The translations under genes were made by a program, and so were the position numbers. Below are positions 1 to 7,884 of a stretch of 64,000 nucleotides of DNA, in pieces; within the stretch, counting starts at the first letter, position 1, and each line of letters starts with the position of its first letter. Below the pieces are notes generated by a model. That model was not told where the DNA came from, did no database searches, and was given only the letters and a program-made list of their open reading frames with translations. The stretch is taken from sequence record MW845758.1; one strand, written 5' to 3'.

Positions 1-10
1 AATTTGATTC

Positions 11-200
11 CATAGTGGTTGCCGCTCCTACGGAGCAAGCGGCCCGAGCGAAACGTCCACCCGGTGGCTGGTGTCCTGACGATGCATGCGATGATGGGGT
101 AACCCTGAGCTGCGAACTGTTAGGTGCCTGCGACTTACCGGAAGGTATCGTCCATACGTCGTTTCTCAATGGCTAGATAACGGTGGGCTTCGGCCCACCA
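11..200 (+). ncRNA. Candidate structured ncRNA A upstream of tRNA-Cys
   Basis: No ORF. Hairpins GCCGCT/AGCGGC (21-43), GGG-GTAA-CCC (96-105), TACC-GGAA-GGTA (136-147), GGTGGGC-TTCG-GCCCACC (182-199): GNRA and UUCG tetraloops. Confidence 0.5.
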
Positions 201-204
201 CACC

Positions 205-279
205 GGAGCAGTGGCTGAAAGGTTAGGCGGGTGATTGCAAATCACTTCCATGGCGGTTCAATTCCGTCCTGCTCCTCCA
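205..279 (+). tRNA. trnC: tRNA-Cys(GCA)
   Basis: Acceptor GGAGCAG/CTGCTCC, loop TT-GCA-AA, T-loop TTCAATT, U73 plus encoded CCA. Confidence 0.95.
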
Positions 280-301
280 ATTTGATTCTCTCGAGACTCG
301 A

Positions 302-472
302 ATGAAATTAAAGACCAAGTTGTACATCGCGGCTGCATTGTTCTTCATGCTGCTCGGTCACTTCGTTGGCCGAATCATGACACTCTTCGGTATCGTACTC
401 GTTATCGGCTTTGTCATCGTTCTGGCTTGGCCTGTCATCAGACGCTTTCTTCCGAAACGAAAAAGTATCTGA
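302..472 (+). CDS. Small membrane protein (56 aa), below the ORF-track cutoff
   Basis: ATG302 to TGA472 translates MKLKTKLYIAAALFFMLLGHFVGRIMTLFGIVLVIGFVIVLAWPVIRRFLPKRKSI: two hydrophobic segments with basic ends. Confidence 0.7.
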   Translation: MKLKTKLYIAAALFFMLLGHFVGRIMTLFGIVLVIGFVIVLAWPVIRRFLPKRKSI

Positions 473-534
473 TACGTACTGGGGACGTTCCCTCCGTACG
501 CACTCTCTCTTAAAACCTTTCAGGAAATAAAAAC

Positions 535-1365
535 ATGAGAAAGTTACTCATTGGGGTATTGGCATTTTTAAGCTTCTCGGTCATGGCAGGCGAAAACGTC
601 GTCATCACCACCGGACAGCAGGGCCTGACGTATAACTCCGTTTACGGGGTGAACTTAGCCGGCGCTCTGAACGAGTTCGGTAATAAGTCGCAGGTTATTC
701 CGTCCAAAGGTTCACTGGACAACCTCGACAAAGTCGCCGCGAACGAAGCCCAAATCGGTTTCACGCAGGCAGATGCTTTCCAGTTCTGGCGTGCTAAGCA
801 CCCGAACGAAGCACAGAACGTTGACATCGTTGGTCAACTGGCAAAAGAGTGCGTGTGGGTGGCTGTCAAGAAAGACGGCAAAATCACCAAAGCCTCTGAC
901 CTGACCAACGGTGCGAAGATTGCGGTCGGTGACCCTGATACCGGTTCATACGCCAGCTGGCAGTATCTGCAGCAACTGGTGAAAGAATACGGCAAAACAG
1001 AAACCTACGCCAAAGGCGGTATCCGTTCGCTGGCCAAAGTCGCCACAGGCGAATACGATGCGTTCTTGTGGGTATCGGCTTCCGGTAAGAACAACAAATT
1101 CCTGGACGCGGTCAACCAAGACAGCTCCGGTCTGCAATTGATTGACATGTCCACGTGGAACGTGAACGACAAACTGCCGAACGGTCAAGCCGTTTACACC
1201 AAAGAGACTGCGAAGGTTAACAGCAGCTTCTTCGGTGGCAATGTTGACGTACCGTGTACTACCACGTTGGTTGTGGCGAACAACAATTCTTCCGACGAGC
1301 TGTTGGATGCGGTCTCTACGATTCTCTTGAAGAATCAGGGTCGCGTTCTCGGCACGGCGAAGTAA
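535..1365 (+). CDS. TAXI-family (TRAP-associated) periplasmic solute-binding-like protein
   Basis: Signal peptide MRKLLIGVLAFLSFSVMA. Motifs ITTGQQGLTY, SKGSLDNL, IGFTQADA, IAVGDPDTGS typical of TAXI receptors. SD AGGA. Confidence 0.8.
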   Translation: MRKLLIGVLAFLSFSVMAGENVVITTGQQGLTYNSVYGVNLAGALNEFGNKSQVIPSKGSLDNLDKVAANEAQIGFTQADAFQFWRAKHPNEAQNVDIVGQLAKECVWVAVKKDGKITKASDLTNGAKIAVGDPDTGSYASWQYLQQLVKEYGKTETYAKGGIRSLAKVATGEYDAFLWVSASGKNNKFLDAVNQDSSGLQLIDMSTWNVNDKLPNGQAVYTKETAKVNSSFFGGNVDVPCTTTLVVANNNSSDELLDAVSTILLKNQGRVLGTAK

Positions 1366-2130
1366 CGGTTTTCATCGACTAGTCCGGTAGGGTTAATGTC
1401 CCTGCTGGAACGGGTGTCAGGGTTTCACCCAACTTTACCTGACGAACTGAGACCGTAAGCAGACCAGTAAGTCTTACGCAGTCGGAGCACACAAAGCACT
1501 ATCTCTGCGGAGGTAGGTGTTCTGCCCGTTACGGACAACCTCATTAGGTGCGTAAATGATTAGAGCTCTGGTCCATCATGCGCTTGGCCTTCTTCGGAAT
1601 GTCATGAGCAATATGCGACTCTGGAGACTCGATAGCTATTGGTTCACAGGCTGTGGGACTGTACGCCATAAACCTGTTTCGAGACAACTGTCTCCGACTC
1701 CGGTGTCCTTAACGGACGAAGGTCAAGCACCAGCCCATTAAGCTGGCTCGCTGACATAGGCAACCATCACCCACAATCTGAATGTAACTGATGGGATTGA
1801 GTTCCCAGATGCGAACGAGTAGCTGTGTGCTACTGAGCACCTCCCCGGGACTGCTGAGCAGCGGGGGAATAGGGCCAAAAGGAAAGTAATAGGGGTCGGT
1901 GCTTGGAGGCGCTAAGACCTGTCCGCGGACAGGCTCAGAAGAAGAAGTCCATCGACCCCCGTTTATCAGGAGTAGCAAAATGGCTGGAACCGCACTGATG
2001 GTTGTTGAGCAACCGAAAGATGAATACACGTTGCAACTGCGTAGCCCTTATCAGGACCCACGTCCGGGAATCCTGTTAACGCTGGCTTTGCTGTTAGCTG
2101 CGCTGGAACACCAATTACAGCAGTAACCGT
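1366..2130 (+). ncRNA. Candidate large ornate ncRNA B (~765 nt)
   Basis: Many nested helices with G-U pairs, e.g. 1384-92/1400-08, 1416-21/1438-43, 1484-90/1517-23, 1761-69/1996-2004, 1892-98/1953-59. No convincing long ORF. Lies directly before tRNA-Leu. Confidence 0.65.
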
Positions 2131-2146
2131 ATATATGCGAAACATT

Positions 2147-2231
2147 GCCGAGGTGGTGAAATTGGTAGATACAGGGGATTTAAAATCCCCCGGCTTAGGT
2201 CGTGCGGGTTCGACCCCCGCCCTCGGTACCA
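2147..2231 (+). tRNA. trnL: tRNA-Leu(TAA)
   Basis: GCCGAGG acceptor, GGGGA-TT-TAA-AA-TCCCC anticodon arm, long variable arm, TTCGACC T-loop, ACCA. No intron. Confidence 0.95.
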
Positions 2232-2232
2232 A

Positions 2233-2308
2233 GCAGGCATAGCTCAGTCGGTAGAGCGTCTGGTTTCCAACCAGAATGTCGTCAGTTCGAACCTGACTGT
2301 CTGCTCCA
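2233..2308 (+). tRNA. trnG: tRNA-Gly(TCC)
   Basis: TCTGG-TT-TCC-AA-CCAGA anticodon arm, U73, CCA. Confidence 0.95.
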
Positions 2309-2412
2309 AAATGTGATTACATGATTACACTGTTATATGCGAAGAGCATGTGTGTTAAGCTAAGCTGTTGTTTGTCAACGGTTTATCTTAGTTTATATGT
2401 ACAAGAATTATT

Positions 2413-2497
2413 GGCGGGTTACTCAAGCGGCAACGAGAGCAGACTGTAAATCTGTTGACTACGGTCTTCGGTGGTTCGAGTCCACCACACGCCACCA
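2413..2497 (+). tRNA. trnY: tRNA-Tyr(GTA)
   Basis: GCAGA-CT-GTA-AA-TCTGT anticodon arm, long variable arm, ACCA. Confidence 0.95.
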
Positions 2498-2503
2498 AAC
2501 AAC

Positions 2504-2579
2504 TTTCCGTTCATCTAGAGGCCTAGGATACGTCACTTTCACTGACGGTACACGAGTTCGAATCTCGTACGGAAAACCA
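2504..2579 (+). tRNA. trnE: tRNA-Glu(TTC), copy 1
   Basis: TTTCCGT/ACGGAAA acceptor, CGTCA-CT-TTC-AC-TGACG anticodon arm, ACCA. Confidence 0.93.
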
Positions 2580-2585
2580 AATACT

Positions 2586-2661
2586 TCTCCCATCGTCTAG
2601 AGGCCAAGGACCCCGGGTTTTCAGTCCGGTAACGCGAGTTCAAATCTCGCTGGGAGAACCA
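2586..2661 (+). tRNA. trnE: tRNA-Glu(TTC), copy 2 with a divergent body
   Basis: TCTCCCA/TGGGAGA acceptor, CCGGG-TT-TTC-AG-TCCGG anticodon arm, ACCA. Confidence 0.93.
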
Positions 2662-2671
2662 AACACAAGAA

Positions 2672-2775
2672 CGTAATCCTGCGGTGTGGTTAGTCGCCAC
2701 TACTAGCGGTTACGCGATACCCACTGCTGCGGGGAGTGTAATAGTGAGGCGGTTGACCCCGCCAAGCAAGCAGCG
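2672..2775 (+). ncRNA. Candidate structured ncRNA C (two long hairpins)
   Basis: CGTAATC(2672-78)/GGTTACG(2708-14) enclosing GTGG/CCAC. CTGCT..AGCAG enclosing GCGGGG/CCCCGC (about 2724-2773). Confidence 0.45.
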
Positions 2776-2783
2776 CGCAATTT

Positions 2784-2859
2784 AGGGGATTAGCTCAGCT
2801 GGCAGAGCACCGGTCTCCAAAACCGGGTGTCAAGTGTTCGAATCACTTATCCCCTGCCA
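2784..2859 (+). tRNA. trnW: tRNA-Trp(CCA)
   Basis: CCGGT-CT-CCA-AA-ACCGG anticodon arm, G73, CCA. Confidence 0.95.
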
Positions 2860-2865
2860 AAGTTT

Positions 2866-2942
2866 AGGACTGTAGCTCAGACGGTTAGAGTGCCGCCCTG
2901 TCACGGCGGAGGTCGCGGGTTCGAAACCCGTCAGTCCTGCCA
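2866..2942 (+). tRNA. trnD: tRNA-Asp(GTC)
   Basis: CCGCC-CT-GTC-AC-GGCGG anticodon arm, G73, CCA. Confidence 0.95.
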
Positions 2943-2959
2943 TTTTTAAGTTGTACAAA

Positions 2960-3035
2960 TGCGTCTTAGCTCAGTTGGTAGAGCGCACCCCTGATAAGGG
3001 TGAGGTCACTGGTTCAAGTCCAGTAGATGCAACCA
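2960..3035 (+). tRNA. trnI: tRNA-Ile(GAT)
   Basis: CACCC-CT-GAT-AA-GGGTG anticodon arm, ACCA. Confidence 0.95.
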
Positions 3036-3041
3036 AACAGT

Positions 3042-3116
3042 TGGGGCGTCGCCAAGCGGTAAGGCCCGGGGCTTTGATCCCCGTATGCACAGGTTCGATT
3101 CCTGTCGCCCCTGCCA
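3042..3116 (+). tRNA. trnQ: tRNA-Gln(TTG)
   Basis: CGGGG-CT-TTG-AT-CCCCG anticodon arm, G73, CCA. U1:U72 mismatch. Confidence 0.93.
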
Positions 3117-3120
3117 AACA

Positions 3121-3384
3121 ATGACACTGTCCCCATGCGTGCTTCGGCATAACGCGGAAGAGGGATGGCAGCCAATAAAAGCATCAGTCATTAACCGTAG
3201 CCTTCGGGTGTAGATGGTGAAGACCGCTAAGTGCAGCCTTTAGAACTCCGTGAGATTCGGAGCGGTGTCACCCTTTCAATGAACGTGCCACCCTAGCAGA
3301 ACTGAACGGACTTATCTCCTGCAGAGTGTCCCCGTTTGTGTTCTGTTCGGGCGGGCTGGTTTAGATACCAAGCGTTCACCCTTT
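3121..3384 (+). ncRNA. Candidate structured ncRNA D (three domains)
   Basis: ATGAC/GTCAT (3121/3191) enclosing a UUCG hairpin. GGTGA/TCACC (3216/3272) enclosing ACCGC/GCGGT. Rod GAACG/CGTTC (3281/3377) enclosing GCAGAAC/GTTCTGT. Confidence 0.55.
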
Positions 3385-3385
3385 T

Positions 3386-3461
3386 AGCTTCTTAGCTCAG
3401 TCGGTAGAGCAACCGAATCATAATCGGCAGGTCGGTGGTTCGAGTCCACCAGAAGCTACCA
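3386..3461 (+). tRNA. trnM: tRNA-CAT, probably elongator Met
   Basis: AGCTTCT/AGAAGCT acceptor, loop AT-CAT-AA, ACCA. Lacks the fMet C1:A72 mismatch and the E. coli Ile2 C4:G69/C5:G68 pairs. Confidence 0.85.
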
Positions 3462-3465
3462 GTAC

Positions 3466-3585
3466 ACACGTCAGAAGGATCATCCCCTCTTGACGAAACC
3501 AATAGGCGCGCGGGGTGTTAACGTTCAGGGCGAAGCAATCCTGAATGAAGTCGTCTGACATGTCAGGGGGCAAGCGGCCATTAAT
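3466..3585 (+). ncRNA. Candidate structured ncRNA E
   Basis: CGTCA(3469-73)/TGACG(3491-95) and TTCAGG(3524-29)/CCTGAA(3540-45) hairpins; palindrome CTGACATGTCAG. Confidence 0.35.
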
Positions 3586-3588
3586 TTA

Positions 3589-3664
3589 GACTCTGTAGTT
3601 CAGTCGGTAGAACGGTGGACTGTTAATCCATATGTCGCAGGTTCAAGTCCTGCCAGAGTCGCCA
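3589..3664 (+). tRNA. trnN: tRNA-Asn(GTT)
   Basis: GTGGA-CT-GTT-AA-TCCAT anticodon arm, G73, CCA. Confidence 0.95.
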
Positions 3665-3670
3665 CACAAT

Positions 3671-3789
3671 GGTGTTGTAGTACGTAGTCTCTTCAGAAGG
3701 TCCATGGTTCGAATCCTTGCTTGCCCTTAACGGGGTGTGTAGCTCAGAGCGGTCTAGAGCACCTGAAGAGAAGTATTGCAACGCCACCA
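3671..3789 (+). ncRNA. Circularly permuted tRNA-like RNA (YrlA/Y-RNA topology) ending in ACCA
   Basis: T-arm CATGG-TTCGAAT-CCTTG (3703-19) precedes a loop-closed acceptor-like stem (3720-39) and D-arm GCTC-AGAGCGGTCTA-GAGC (3742-60). Anticodon stem replaced by CTCTTCAG/CTGAAGAG plus a 13-bp terminal helix 3671-83/3773-85, then ACCA. Confidence 0.8.
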
Positions 3790-4096
3790 TCTTTGCGATG
3801 GGACAATCATCGAATGGCATTCCGGAAAAATTTCATTCAACCTAACACGTGCTGATTGTTCCAAAGCAAACACTATACAGACAGAAGCCGAATAGGTTTT
3901 TCTATCGCGCATACGCCCAGAGCCATTACTGGCTTCCGTCTGTTCCAAGTTTGTCAGTCAGGTAAGTTCGTTTTCCATTATGGATACTTGCTGTGTCAGC
4001 CTGACTGGCAATCCACATTAGCCCGCGCTAATAGGTGTCTGGGAATGACCCGCTCAGAGGCCACCCTTGAGTTAAGATTCGACTTCTAAAGCACCA
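3790..4096 (+). ncRNA. Candidate structured ncRNA G (~305 nt)
   Basis: 10-bp helices 3800-09/3853-62 and 3953-62/4000-09; 3877-82/3938-43 enclosing 3884-89/3931-36. 3' end has T-loop-like AGA-TTCGACT-TCT followed by GCACCA. Confidence 0.55.
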
Positions 4097-4107
4097 ATGC
4101 CAGGGTA

Positions 4108-4140
4108 CCCTTCTCCTTAACCGGAGAAGGGATTACTCTA
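4108..4140 (+). terminator. Probable terminator closing the RNA island
   Basis: CCCTTCTCC-TTAACC-GGAGAAGGG followed by an AT-rich tract. Confidence 0.6.
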
Positions 4141-4150
4141 TTTTATTTCG

Positions 4151-4170
4151 GATAGATGTAATCAATGTGA
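4151..4170 (+). promoter_or_regulatory. Putative early (virion RNAP) promoter motif
   Basis: GATAGATGTAATCAATGTGA, variant of GATAGA-TATTAT-N4-GTGA. Confidence 0.6.
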
Positions 4171-4212
4171 AGGAATATGCATTTCAACTAATCGACCATC
4201 AAGAGGCCCATC

Positions 4213-5301
4213 ATGAACGCACGCATGTCAAGCTACAATCCAAATGGTTCACCAAAAGTAGACGCTATCAGCAGTCTGCAGGCATTAGGTTATACCCTGC
4301 GTCAAGCAAAGAATATTCGTCCTTGGCTCCCCCGTCAATTCGGCATGGCAGGTAATGCGCTACCACGCGCTAACCTCGAGTTCTGGAAAGCGTATGAGAT
4401 AGTCAAGGACATGCAGAAGTACCAGAAGTCCAACGCACTCTCCCTCCAATTCGACGGAGCGAAAGGACAAACCTGCTTCACCTTTAACAACAACGAATTC
4501 TTGCGCTACAGAAGCCCCACCCTTGAGACAACAGTCTGGTCATTGGAGTTTGTACGTCATTTCGGTGACGGCCTGTGGCGTAGCGCTAACGACGTCTACG
4601 AGGGTGGTCCTCGTGCCCTCGAATACATCGGTGAGAACATCCGCTTGAAACGCGGTGAGCTGGCGAAAGCTATTGAGCTGATGGAAACCAAACCGCGGGG
4701 GTACGATATCAACTCTGACTACCAGTGGTTGCTCTGGGATAAGAACCAGTACATCGTCAATGCAACCGAGTCCGTGAAAACGTTCTGGATGATGGCAGCT
4801 ATCTGTCACTCTAACCTGACCGTGAGTAAAGGTTGGAACTTGCATCCAGAAGGACTGTTCATCACTAAGTACCAGTCCTTTGACCCATCTCGCTTTGCAT
4901 TCGGCTTGAAGACGTTGTGTGAACTCTACACAGCACCAGATGTGCTCAACACCGCAGGGTACCATTCCAGCAAAGAGCGTCTGATGCGTATGCACGCTAT
5001 CCAGATACTCCAGCAACGGAGTTTCATTTCCCTGATGGATGGGAATTTCCTGCCGGGTTTACACCTGAAAGGCAACAGCTTTATCTTTGAGAAAACCGCA
5101 GTAGAAGAAACAATGTCAGACTACGCCAACGTGCCTTCCGCGATGAGTGGTCTCTTCCCTTGCTTCTTATCCTCAACAGCGATGCAGACGTTTAACGGCA
5201 TCCCTGAGAACTACGCAACGATACTCCGTGTGCCTGAATCGCTGACCCAAGTTTATACACCGGGTGAGTGGACAGACGCGGTGCGTAACGTATTCCGTTA
5301 A
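4213..5301 (+). CDS. Hypothetical protein (362 aa), probably early
   Basis: SD GAGG, long ORF between the promoter motif and a terminator. No recognisable motif. Confidence 0.85.
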   Translation: MNARMSSYNPNGSPKVDAISSLQALGYTLRQAKNIRPWLPRQFGMAGNALPRANLEFWKAYEIVKDMQKYQKSNALSLQFDGAKGQTCFTFNNNEFLRYRSPTLETTVWSLEFVRHFGDGLWRSANDVYEGGPRALEYIGENIRLKRGELAKAIELMETKPRGYDINSDYQWLLWDKNQYIVNATESVKTFWMMAAICHSNLTVSKGWNLHPEGLFITKYQSFDPSRFAFGLKTLCELYTAPDVLNTAGYHSSKERLMRMHAIQILQQRSFISLMDGNFLPGLHLKGNSFIFEKTAVEETMSDYANVPSAMSGLFPCFLSSTAMQTFNGIPENYATILRVPESLTQVYTPGEWTDAVRNVFR

Positions 5302-5307
5302 TTTAAG

Positions 5308-5333
5308 AAAGAGCCTCCGGGCTCTTTTTTTTT
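5308..5333 (+). terminator. Rho-independent terminator
   Basis: AGAGCC-TCCG-GGCTCT plus T run. Confidence 0.85.
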
Positions 5334-5382
5334 ATTTTTTACTTCATGTACGGTTTCTTATAGAAGGCGATAGGAGACCTCA

Positions 5383-5781
5383 ATGAACACAGCAACCAGC
5401 TATTACGAATTACTTGCTAATGGCATCTTGCCAGAAGATGTAATTGAACGTTCACGCATTGATGAACTACAATCAGACATGATGGAATTTATCCATACTC
5501 TGCCCATGTTTCAGACGTGGCTTGCGACCCTTGAGCGTAGCGACCAATTGGCGATGCGTGAAGGCGAAGATGTCCCCGTTATCTATACCGGCCAAAATAT
5601 CTCCCGGCATGAAGCGCGTGCTATTCGCGATGACCCCGAGGTCATGTTAGGCTTCTTCCGTTCCATGGCAATCGCCATTACCGACAGCGGTTTACCAATG
5701 GAAGAAATCTTTGCGATAATGACTGATGCAATGTATTCAATGATACATGCCCACACGACAAAAATTGAAAACGTGCATTAA
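5383..5781 (+). CDS. Hypothetical protein (132 aa)
   Basis: SD AGGAG, clean ORF. Confidence 0.85.
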   Translation: MNTATSYYELLANGILPEDVIERSRIDELQSDMMEFIHTLPMFQTWLATLERSDQLAMREGEDVPVIYTGQNISRHEARAIRDDPEVMLGFFRSMAIAITDSGLPMEEIFAIMTDAMYSMIHAHTTKIENVH

Positions 5782-7566: not shown

Positions 7567-7884
7567 GTGACTAATGTACTATTCGAACTGTACCCCGGTC
7601 TCGGTTCTTGTATACCAACAGATATAATAAAAGGTATACAGGAGCTGTTGTTTCCGGGCATGTATCCGGACATACCGAAACGTATCCTTACCGAGGCAGA
7701 ACGTCAGTTCGGCAGTTCTGCTTGGTATACCGTCTTCTCGCTTGGGCGTCATCACGCTCAACCGTTTCACTTTTGCAATGGGGTTGTAACTACGTGGTCA
7801 AATTACACATCGAACCAGCTGATGTCCATAATCAGATCTGGCAACCAATCATGCTATCCCCTTACGGAAGATGTTTGGAAATGA
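7567..7884 (+). CDS. Hypothetical protein (105 aa; start moved to GTG7567)
   Basis: SD AAGGAG 8 nt upstream; stop overlaps the next ATG (ATGA). Confidence 0.65.
   Translation: MTNVLFELYPGLGSCIPTDIIKGIQELLFPGMYPDIPKRILTEAERQFGSSAWYTVFSLGRHHAQPFHFCNGVVTTWSNYTSNQLMSIIRSGNQSCYPLTEDVWK

Follow-up and report, generated by a model that had tools for sequence, protein, structure and literature searches.

The transfer RNA (tRNA) island of Erwinia phage pEa_SNUABM_11 raises the question of whether the segments that separate its tRNA genes are inert spacers or genes for RNAs in their own right. The island lies in the window, a stretch of 64,000 nucleotides (nt) of sequence record MW845758.1. The original prediction described a mosaic array of 12 tRNAs and seven non-coding segments, and proposed that the tRNA operon carries a set of uncharacterized structured RNAs. 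This proposal stands for most of the downstream spacers, namely the modules designated B, C, and s5, a permuted tRNA mimic, and a structured tail (Table 1), which are conserved and show covarying or compensatory substitutions; it does not stand for the segments that encode proteins, and probably not for the upstream region 1366–1963. On the comparison of related sequences, we consider it probable that the tRNA operon serves as an expression and processing cassette for stable structured RNAs that would be excised from the tRNA precursor.

Positions 1–4300 of the window show 100% identity with the beginning of pEa_SNUABM_11, an Erwinia phage with a circular record of 251 kilobases (kb) that belongs to the genus Wellingtonvirus of the SPN3US-like jumbo phages. 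Its closest relatives are Wellington and Kwan, followed by Erskinevirus (phiEaH2 and Asesino), Machinavirus, and Seoulvirus (SPN3US-like). The label "chimallivirus" that had been applied to this group is reasonable because a 2026 review names SPN3US and Asesino among the nucleus-forming Chimalliviridae, and the alternative that the phage lies outside the chimalliviruses was dropped on the same ground. The tRNAs were called with ARAGORN (default and relaxed) and with the Rfam tRNA model, and Rfam 15 was scanned at permissive thresholds (E up to 10) over the island, its sub-regions, and eight related loci. Minimum free energy (MFE) z-scores were computed against dinucleotide shuffles, of which only 20 were used for 1366–2146. 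Covariation was tested by the number of base pairs changed on both sides and by a covariation score, each compared with 500 shuffles, with slid controls for the RNA termed E75 and for a leader upstream of it; fractions such as 0/500 give the shuffles that reach the observed value.

The evidence that carries the proposal is the retention of helices through compensatory changes, which is found in B, s5, the tail, the leader, and E75 and is not significant in a coding control. Module B, compared among seven phages of two genera, has 35 pairs (94.2% paired), ten of which are changed on both sides (1/500), and a covariation score of 0.293 against a shuffle mean of 0.169. Among five sequences of s5, nine of the 34 pairs (98.8% paired) are changed on both sides (0/500), with a score of 0.300 versus 0.166, and in the five-sequence alignment of the tail, 23 of 135 pairs (94.9% paired) are changed on both sides where 7.6 are expected (0/500). 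As a negative control, 161 nt of the TAXI gene from the same seven phages were passed through the same alifold-then-count pipeline and gave three pairs changed on both sides (174/500) and a score of 0.133 against a shuffle mean of 0.118 (58/500). Module s3 is available only as three near-identical sequences and its covariation value is reached by 151/500 shuffles; it is 92.6% identical to its counterpart in Wellington, versus about 83% for the neighboring protein gene. As judged by these comparisons, the downstream spacers B, s5, and tail are under selection for RNA structure, and the many conserved G-U pairs together with strand-specific folding energy point to RNAs of the + strand.

Since three coding regions had been overlooked in segments described as non-coding (11–176, 1556–1741, and 1980–2126) and the record is sparsely annotated, one might suppose that the remaining spacers hide more small protein genes. 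The pattern of change speaks otherwise. The relatives of s5 differ by insertions or deletions of 1 and 2 nt, and B, s5, E75, and the tail together show differences of 1, 2, and 5 nt and no shared open reading frame (ORF) on the + strand, which excludes coding in these four; moreover, their substitutions are compensatory and not concentrated at third positions. Further hidden genes are therefore scarcely credible.

Comparison with related islands by BLAST resolves the spacers into discrete blocks whose breakpoints fall at helix ends, and the tails of the relatives carry extra hairpin insertions at helix boundaries. The order of the blocks is C-B-s5 in the metagenomic relative L013, B-s5 in Wellington, and B-C-tRNA-Met-s5 in pEa_SNUABM_11. 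Because this order differs between genomes, the modules behave as independent genes, as the tRNAs do. Such a mosaic of presence and absence, with shuffling of discrete modules and with alternative cassettes between the 61-amino-acid ORF and E75 that are distributed incongruently with relatedness, would also be produced by remnants of mobile RNAs (group I intron cores, introns free of homing endonucleases, or retron-like non-coding RNAs) that land in tRNA islands. We regard this origin as extremely improbable, since no intron, retron, or ribozyme family is matched at E up to 10, the modules interrupt no gene, and no endonuclease or reverse transcriptase gene adjoins them. The Rfam scan of the window and the eight related loci returned no non-tRNA family at its gathering score, the remainder being tRNAs, noise, and one weak alignment to YrlA. 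GOLLD and ROOL, which the original prediction had named as precedents, give no covariance-model match in the island (E up to 10); like the modules here, they are structured RNAs beside phage tRNA genes, but they measure 500–800 nt compared with 76–151 nt.

Modules B and C are related to each other and have tRNA-like parts. In B, the 5′ junction A3121-U3122/G3123 opens a 7-base-pair (bp) terminal stem (3123–3129 with 3263–3269) that is followed by the 3′ tail A-CCC, and an invariant T-arm-like hairpin, CUCCG-UGAGAUU-CGGAG (3246–3262), abuts the 3′ strand of this stem. Its loop has seven nucleotides with U1 and A5 as in a T loop, and the 7 + 5 bp stack corresponds to the acceptor/T minihelix of a tRNA. 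The termini of C, CAAU/GA...UCACCC, are as in B; they enclose a stem (3281–3286 with 3372–3377) and a T-like hairpin (3357–3370, loop UUAGAU), of 6 and 4–5 bp, respectively, and lead into the tail A-CCC. Module C was found in two metagenomic relatives, L013 and L012, where it stands ahead of B, and its pair 3283–3375 is A-U in pEa_SNUABM_11, G·U in L013, and G-C in L012. Module B has no match in Rfam. In both modules a large insert takes the place of the D and anticodon arms, an arrangement shared with the tRNA-like domain of transfer-messenger RNA (tmRNA); they are unlike tmRNA and signal recognition particle (SRP) RNA in that ARAGORN makes no tmRNA call and neither a tag ORF nor an SRP domain IV motif is visible. 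They also have C3-G70 and not the G3-U70 alanine identity pair.

The ends of B, C, and the permuted mimic are alike: all three begin CAAU/G and end ACC(C/A) after a 6–7-bp terminal stem. The optimal bacterial RNase P site is A(-2)U(-1)/G(+1) with a 3′ RCC that pairs with L15 and a 12-bp acceptor/T ruler (PMC10731613), and the same consensus is found in pre-SRP RNA, tmRNA, and phage C4 RNA (PMC10731613). Each of the three elements has AAU/G at its 5′ end (3121–3123, 3279–3281, and 3669–3671), thus U(-1) and G(+1) with A(-2), and an RCC at its 3′ end (ACCC at 3270–3273 and 3378–3381, ACCA at 3786–3789); a stack or continuous helix near 12 bp is formed by 7 + 5 bp in B, 6 + 4–5 bp in C, and a 13-bp helix in the mimic. 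The RCC tails are kept in the relatives except L012, whose copies of B and C end in G-CCC and ACCU. From these features, B, C, and the mimic are predicted to be RNase P substrates. A fourth combination of U/G, a 6-bp stem, and ACCC is present at 3931–4066 in the tail region; its 3′ half is not conserved in relatives, and it is probably a chance match.

The third of these elements is the mimic, which holds a circularly permuted tRNA body, and the limits 3671–3789 given for it in the original prediction bound one RNA-like module exactly. It runs from the junction A3669-U3670/G3671 to the tail A-CCA (3786–3789), and its ends pair in a rod of 13 bp (3671–3683 with 3773–3785) and 9 bp (3688–3696 with 3763–3771) that contains three G-U pairs. 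The rod is capped, in this order, by a T arm (3703–3719) with the canonical loop UUCGAAU, a closed acceptor-like hairpin (3720–3739), and a D arm (3742–3760). Its MFE z-score is -4.67 on the + strand versus -1.97 on the - strand. With its halves put back in normal order and any 7-nt loop between them, the body is called as a cloverleaf by ARAGORN at default settings; the element as it stands holds no contiguous cloverleaf, which needs both the re-ordering and the artificial loop. Circularly permuted tRNA genes of the red alga Cyanidioschyzon merolae likewise have the 3′ half before the 5′ half, with the acceptor strands joined by a short loop and with pairing flanks; functional tRNAs arise from them by way of a circular intermediate and with the help of a splicing endonuclease, an enzyme that bacteria are not known to have. 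The mimic differs from them in its 22-bp rod, without an anticodon loop, at the anticodon position.

A homologue of the mimic was found in INPHARED only in pEa_SNUABM_9, and no further copies were found in IMG/VR or metagenomes with a strict pattern. Compensatory substitutions in this homologue maintain the closing stem, the acceptor-like stem, and the T stem, whose U-U mismatch is shared by the two copies. Positions 1469–1617 of pEa_SNUABM_9 (L082) form an unannotated tRNA within a tRNA, in which the outer tRNA is complete, with an acceptor stem GGGAUAU/GUGUCCC and D and T arms, and with an anticodon loop that is replaced by a permuted body homologous to 3692–3767 of the window.

The order of parts in the mimic is that of YrlA, in which a long stem formed by the 5′ and 3′ ends likewise bears first the T arm, then the acceptor-like stem-loop and the D arm. 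The Rfam YrlA model (RF02553) aligns end to end with it (model positions 1–114) at 19.1 bits, with a gathering score of 69 and an E-value of 0.058 on 141 nt. YrlA RNAs occur in some phages, and that of M. smegmatis is cut by RNase P and receives CCA from the CCA-adding enzyme (PMC4201824). That 3671–3789 is a bona fide YrlA Y RNA, with Ro60/Rsr tethering an exoribonuclease, is nevertheless very improbable. Besides the sub-threshold score, the motif GNCGAAN0-1G near the YrlA 5′ end, which is the presumed Ro60 contact (PMC4201824), has no counterpart in 3665–3700, the motif columns of the model aligning to ACGUAG and a gap. Among all coding sequences within 4 kb there is no Pfam TROVE match, the only Pfam family matches being to NMT1-like/phosphonate-binding (TAXI) and DUF7484. 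The mimic also differs from YrlA in carrying its CCA end on the rod and not on the acceptor-like arm, and in its location within a tRNA operon. On present evidence, it is like the tRNA mimics of the YrlA type but falls outside the YrlA family.

The same score bears on another explanation, according to which the spacers are decayed tRNAs or recombination scars and the mimic is the T half of one dead tRNA beside the D half of another. Chen et al. caution that YrlA is mimicked by tRNA dimers, and the YrlA model gives genuine dimers of the relatives 24–26 bits, above the score of the mimic. The tRNA content differs in every pair of relatives compared, B and C retain acceptor- and T-like parts, and the mimic is present in two isolates only. 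Decay would not, however, keep helices through compensatory changes, and the closing rod with its three G-U pairs and low folding energy is unexpected of a dimer remnant, as is the retention of the T, acceptor-like, and closing stems by double substitutions in pEa_SNUABM_9. Nor do the spacers contain a cryptic tRNA on the + strand, either with the Rfam tRNA model (E up to 10) or with ARAGORN at default and relaxed (80–90%) thresholds; relaxed ARAGORN searches of the + strand remain empty until thresholds at which noise dominates. Taken as a whole, decay is an improbable account of these segments.

Three kinds of unit make up the mosaic of the island: ordinary tRNA genes, genes for small proteins, and genes for structured RNAs that are self-contained. 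We infer the transcription unit, the processing, and the stability and function of the products as follows. Two matches to the AT-rich motif GT[AT]TATATG, the only ones in the 64-kb window at up to one mismatch, lie at 2129–2137 and 2391–2399, the second (GTTTATATG) 14 nt ahead of tRNA-Tyr; they can be likened to the AT-rich -10-centered early and TATG late motifs of jumbo-phage RNA polymerases, and we infer a promoter role for both. The first copy is conserved in relatives, where TTAGTATATATG is kept ahead of the first tRNA. The stem of the terminator at 4104–4148 covaries (CCCUUCUCC/GGAGAAGGG versus CCCCUCUCC/GGAGAGGGG) and its U-tract is conserved, and no terminator is seen between it and the motif at 2391–2399. 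Together with the terminator-like hairpin upstream of that motif, these signals suggest a Leu-Gly unit and a second unit from tRNA-Tyr to the terminator. The second, about 1.75 kb, would probably be one precursor with ten tRNAs, among which lie five or more modules of other kinds (s3, B, C, s5, and the permuted mimic), and with the structured tail after them. Host enzymes that mature tRNAs would excise the modules, with the RNase P cut at each tRNA 5′ end setting the 3′ limit of the preceding module; B, C, and the mimic would themselves be RNase P substrates, marked as such by their A(-2)U(-1)/G(+1) junction, their terminal stem, and the A-CC at their 3′ end. The terminal helices would shield the excised RNAs from exonucleases, so that stable small RNAs accumulate. 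The most likely job of the three mimics would be to occupy or recruit a host or phage tRNA-binding factor as a decoy or scaffold, and not to decode, because they copy the acceptor/T-arm or elbow surface without an anticodon.

The main rival to an operon that releases stable RNAs is a cis-acting role, in which the spacers are parts of the precursor (insulation, entry sites for RNase E or RNase III, stabilization of the transcript) that are degraded after processing and do nothing in trans. The spacers do lie inside the presumed tRNA transcript, several are mainly simple hairpins (the tail), some fold no better than shuffles, and no partner protein gene adjoins them. A passive spacer, on the other hand, has no need of invariant internal loops such as those of E75, GGCAGCCAAUAAAAGCAUC of B, or the T-like loop of B, and the modules remain recognizable although their places among the tRNAs change. 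Many tRNAs of the operon stand merely 1–7 nt apart, so that no spacer is required, and RNase P-type ends with protective terminal stems predict intact release. We therefore hold a purely cis-acting role to be unlikely, though it is the alternative to be taken most seriously.

Several points weigh against the cassette explanation in general. The claim that the spacers fold better than shuffles is borne out for 3665–3789 (z -4.7) and 3790–4150 (z -4.4), is intermediate for 1366–2146 (z -2.4), and fails for 2662–2783 (z -0.4), 3117–3385 (z -1.2), 3462–3588 (z -1.6), and 1–204 (z -1.0), so that the folding energies of s3, B, and s5 are no better than those of shuffled sequences; the AT-rich spacer 2309–2412, set up as a control, has z -2.0. 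Under the refuting condition that the original prediction set for folding energy, several spacers would fail; the support for structured spacers is comparative covariation and not folding energy. The alignments hold few sequences (3–14), those of s5, C, and the tail have little phylogenetic depth, and the tested structures were built from the same alignments on which they were scored, which inflates the agreement. The mimic, present in two phage isolates only, could be a recent rearrangement. The putative promoter motif does not recur elsewhere in the 64-kb window, where no recurrent promoter motif was found. A loose definition of the RNase P-type end (U-1, G+1, a stem of at least 6 bp, and RCC) has about 12 chance matches per 64-kb strand, which makes such ends unusable as a stand-alone detector; they carry weight here because they coincide with module ends defined by homology and with the shared CAAU leader. 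This phage group transcribes inside a proteinaceous nucleus, from which the precursor, like the phage tRNAs, would have to be exported before cytoplasmic RNase P could process it. Apart from these points, a search of the literature for non-coding RNAs in SPN3US-like phages, or for transcriptomes of the group, yielded nothing relevant.

The region upstream of the tRNA-Leu gene holds a separate conserved unit (1384–1963), composed of a leader, the 61-amino-acid ORF embedded in a long-range helix, and E75, and it is common to all SPN3US-like phages examined. The leader, of about 145 nt, covaries strongly: in 14 phages of four genera, 20 of its 29 pairs (93.3% paired) are changed on both sides (0/500), and it scores 0.600 for covariation versus 0.221 in shuffles (0/500), with slid controls of at most 0.133. 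The long-range helix has about 31 bp and encloses a conserved hairpin (about 1725–1753) with the stop codon of the ORF in its loop; the whole structure has 56 pairs (88.7% paired), of which 15 are changed on both sides (0/500), and a score of 0.251 versus 0.171. The alignment of E75 draws 13 distinct sequences (97.3% paired) from Wellington-, Erskine-, Machina-, and Seoulvirus, and its score is 0.321 versus 0.088 (0/500; slid controls at most 0.062); six pairs are changed on both sides (153/500), which is not significant by that measure. The two internal-loop strands of E75, CUUGGAG(G/A)CG with a single variable position and AAGAAGAAGUC, are near-invariant, and the length of the E75 hairpin varies by 1–2 nt, which argues that E75 is not coding. 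E75 has no match in Rfam, and neither model hits, exon context, nor a tmRNA call supports RNase P RNA, tmRNA, 4.5S RNA, a group I or II intron, or a riboswitch at 1366–1960, all of which were rejected.

Exact-pattern scans found E75 only in the SPN3US-like phage group: the scan of GTDB genomes found none, and nine matches were obtained in metagenomes, four on contigs of 240–250 kb and five on fragments of 4–8 kb. A 15-mer scan of IMG/VR matched 25 contigs, which are taken as pattern matches only. In phiEaH2, Asesino, and L012, E75 adjoins the first tRNA, and in pEa_SNUABM_11 the 48-amino-acid gene and the promoter-like motif stand between E75 and tRNA-Leu. Because it lies upstream of both, the unit 1366–1963 is probably outside the tRNA transcript in this phage. 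The exposed GGAGG and (AAG)3 strands of the unit call to mind anti-Shine-Dalgarno, CsrA, or Hfq distal-face ligands, although this is only a reading of the sequence. At the position of E75 in Wellington (L016, about 1890–1960), the 10-bp P1 is kept (GGAGGGGAUG/CAUCCCCUCC) and the conserved interior is swapped for an unrelated sequence; Kwan is presumed to be like Wellington there by near-identity. Between the GUAGCUGUGUGCUAC hairpin and E75 lies a variable cassette (1834–1885; A7 columns 566–625) with at least three unrelated alternative forms, which cut across genus boundaries and thereby suggest cassette exchange.

The ORF within this unit is one reason why the segment 1366–2130 is non-coding only in part: it holds two real small ORFs, of 61 and 48 amino acids, beside the structured leader and E75. 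Versions of the first, with 55–69 amino acids and a shared stop context, are present in 16 of 16 related phages; it shows third-position synonymous changes relative to L012, frame-preserving insertions or deletions of 3 and 6 nt, and a match to phrog_26199 (E 2e-5). It is absent from the annotation of MW845758.1, and its C-terminal half overlaps the conserved RNA helix. The second is of equal length in the metagenomic relative L017, from which it differs by synonymous changes, and it matches phrog_10783 (E 1e-7); both PHROGs are without an assigned function. The segment 11–200 proved to be largely coding as well. Positions 1–176, joined to 251262–251480 of MW845758.1, form a single ORF of which they supply the C-terminal two-thirds, and the gene has no annotation because the origin chosen arbitrarily for the circular record cuts it in two. 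Along its whole length the 73-amino-acid protein is matched by phrog_5444 (E 4e-25), and its amino acid sequence is conserved in all relatives, with homologues that include Wellington gp1 and Asesino gp4. The annotation is thereby corrected for one gene split by the record origin and for one conserved gene, that of 61 amino acids, missing from the record.

What remains non-coding in that first segment is a 16-nt hairpin, GTGGGCTTCGGCCCAC. It is identical, with one copy per locus, in phages of all four genera (28 other loci), and it occurs once in the window even when two mismatches are allowed. The hairpin precedes tRNA-Cys in Erwinia phages and directly precedes the leader in Seoulvirus. Being strictly invariant and without covariation, it is compatible with either an RNA or a DNA site.

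Table 1. Coordinates of the features of the tRNA island in the window
Feature	Position	Strand	Evidence or context
3′ part of unannotated origin-crossing protein gene (73 amino acids, MNLYLL...HTSFLNG-stop)	1–176	+	record end joined to start
UUCG hairpin GTGGGCTTCGGCCCAC	183–198	+	6 nt upstream of tRNA-Cys
tRNA-Cys(GCA)	205–279	+	ARAGORN, Rfam tRNA model
Structured leader of 61-amino-acid ORF	1384–1526	+	five helices; conserved loops GGG-YUGAUAU-CCC, GCANACCNNUAAGUC
Unannotated conserved small protein gene, 61 amino acids	1556–1741	+	relatives, phrog_26199
Long-range irregular helix, ORF codons 1619–1657 with 3′ untranslated region 1770–1808	1619–1808	+	covariation
E75, 76-nt RNA	1888–1963	+	P1 10 bp + 3-bp extension; P2 10 bp with bulges
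48-amino-acid protein gene, annotated pEaSNUABM11_00004	1980–2126	+	synonymous changes, PHROG
Promoter-like AT-rich motif GTATATATG	2129–2137	+	10 nt ahead of tRNA-Leu
tRNA-Leu(UAA), tRNA-Gly(UCC)	2147–2308	+	ARAGORN, Rfam tRNA model
AT-rich spacer: terminator-like hairpin with T-run (2361–2385 + tail), then promoter-like GTTTATATG (2391–2399)	2361–2399	+	
tRNA-Tyr, tRNA-Glu, tRNA-Glu	2413–2661	+	ARAGORN, Rfam tRNA model
Module s3, conserved 122-nt spacer, candidate RNA	2662–2783	+	identity to Wellington
tRNA-Trp, tRNA-Asp, tRNA-Ile, tRNA-Gln	2784–3116	+	ARAGORN, Rfam tRNA model
Module B, 151 nt, tRNA-like minihelix + insert	3123–3273	+	homology, covariation
Module C, 101 nt, relative of B	3281–3381	+	homology with L013, L012
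tRNA-Met(CAU)	3386–3461	+	ARAGORN, Rfam tRNA model
Module s5: 5′ hairpin + three-way junction	3462–3585	+	covariation
tRNA-Asn(GUU)	3589–3664	+	ARAGORN, Rfam tRNA model
Permuted tRNA mimic, 119 nt	3671–3789	+	MFE z, un-permutation, homologue
Tail: conserved hairpin series (about 3790–3871, 3877–3943, 3951–4012, 4018–4035)	3790–4100	+	MFE z -4.4, covariation
Intrinsic terminator: 9-bp GC stem, then CUCUAUUUUAUUU	4104–4148	+	covarying stem, conserved U-tract

The remaining elements of the original layout fare variously. All 12 tRNAs are where they had been placed, on the + strand, with agreement between ARAGORN and the Rfam tRNA model. They do not form one uninterrupted array, since three protein genes stand between tRNA-Cys and the other eleven, among them the gene for a TciB-like small membrane protein (302–472) and that for a TAXI/NMT1-family periplasmic solute-binding protein (535–1365). 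Other IMG/VR contigs commonly carry close homologues of the latter (64–67% amino acid identity), as would be expected if it had been acquired from a host. The seven tRNA-free segments are located as described, two of them being wholly or partly protein-coding (11–176 and the ORFs in 1366–2130). The spacer 2309–2412 is AT-rich as claimed, with a GC fraction of 0.43 versus 0.50–0.57 around it, and UUCG-capped hairpins and G-U pairs do exist, for example at 183–198 and 3141–3148.

Non-canonical tRNA-like genes were also encountered in the relatives, at 3915–4035 of Asesino (L004), 1340–1462 of pEa_SNUABM_9, and about 4884–4965 and 5308–5401 of Huxley (L018). Among these odd tRNAs are long ones with insertions of about 50 nt, annotated as tRNA-Ile(AAT), and one with a UUCG-capped hairpin instead of the anticodon loop. 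The Rfam tRNA model further scores 30–42 bits at 7597–7668 and 7671–7741 of L012 and at 3206–3275 and 3278–3349 of SPLA1a (L005), sites that have neither an ARAGORN call nor a record annotation and that may be divergent or decaying tRNAs.

The closest precedent for these modules is found in phage T4, whose RNAC and RNAD (species 1 and 2 RNAs) are made with the T4 tRNA region and whose role is still described as unknown (PMC3014915, PMC9697503). As in T4, small non-tRNA RNA genes of pEa_SNUABM_11 lie between phage tRNA genes and share their strand; the co-transcription described for T4 is predicted here. The T4 RNAs are two, compared with at least five to six modules and three overt tRNA mimics in a nucleus-forming jumbo phage. 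The mimic further resembles pre-4.5S (SRP) RNA and C4 RNA in presenting a plain long helix with ACCA (PMC10731613). The kind of element is therefore already known from T4 RNAC/RNAD; the families in pEa_SNUABM_11 are new, more numerous, and comparatively well supported.

A more ambitious and less likely reading, which we offer as tentative, is that the modules of SPN3US-like nucleus-forming phages are a shuffling repertoire of undescribed trans-acting RNAs matured by the host tRNA machinery, several of them anticodon-less mimics that would act as decoys or scaffolds, and that E75, the leader, and the ORF make up a new, clade-wide large regulatory RNA. Targets that might then be imagined for the decoys, with as much reserve, are tRNA-targeting defense nucleases, the CCA-adding or modification enzymes, and RNase P, and the exposed GGAGG and (AAG)3 loops could on the same speculative footing hint at binding to the ribosome, CsrA, or Hfq.

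Clusters of tRNA genes in phages are usually annotated as tRNAs and junk, and the island of pEa_SNUABM_11 contains at least five spacer elements that are under selection for RNA structure and are absent from Rfam. E75 and the leader, conserved in four genera of nucleus-forming jumbo phages that include the genetic model SPN3US, offer a tractable system in which to study a new class of RNA. Few natural tRNA mimics are predicted to be cut by RNase P; modules B and C and the permuted element add to their number and may bear on how phage tRNA regions counter bacterial defenses that target tRNAs. As a richer and comparative second example, the island makes the question of the role of T4 RNAC/RNAD testable.

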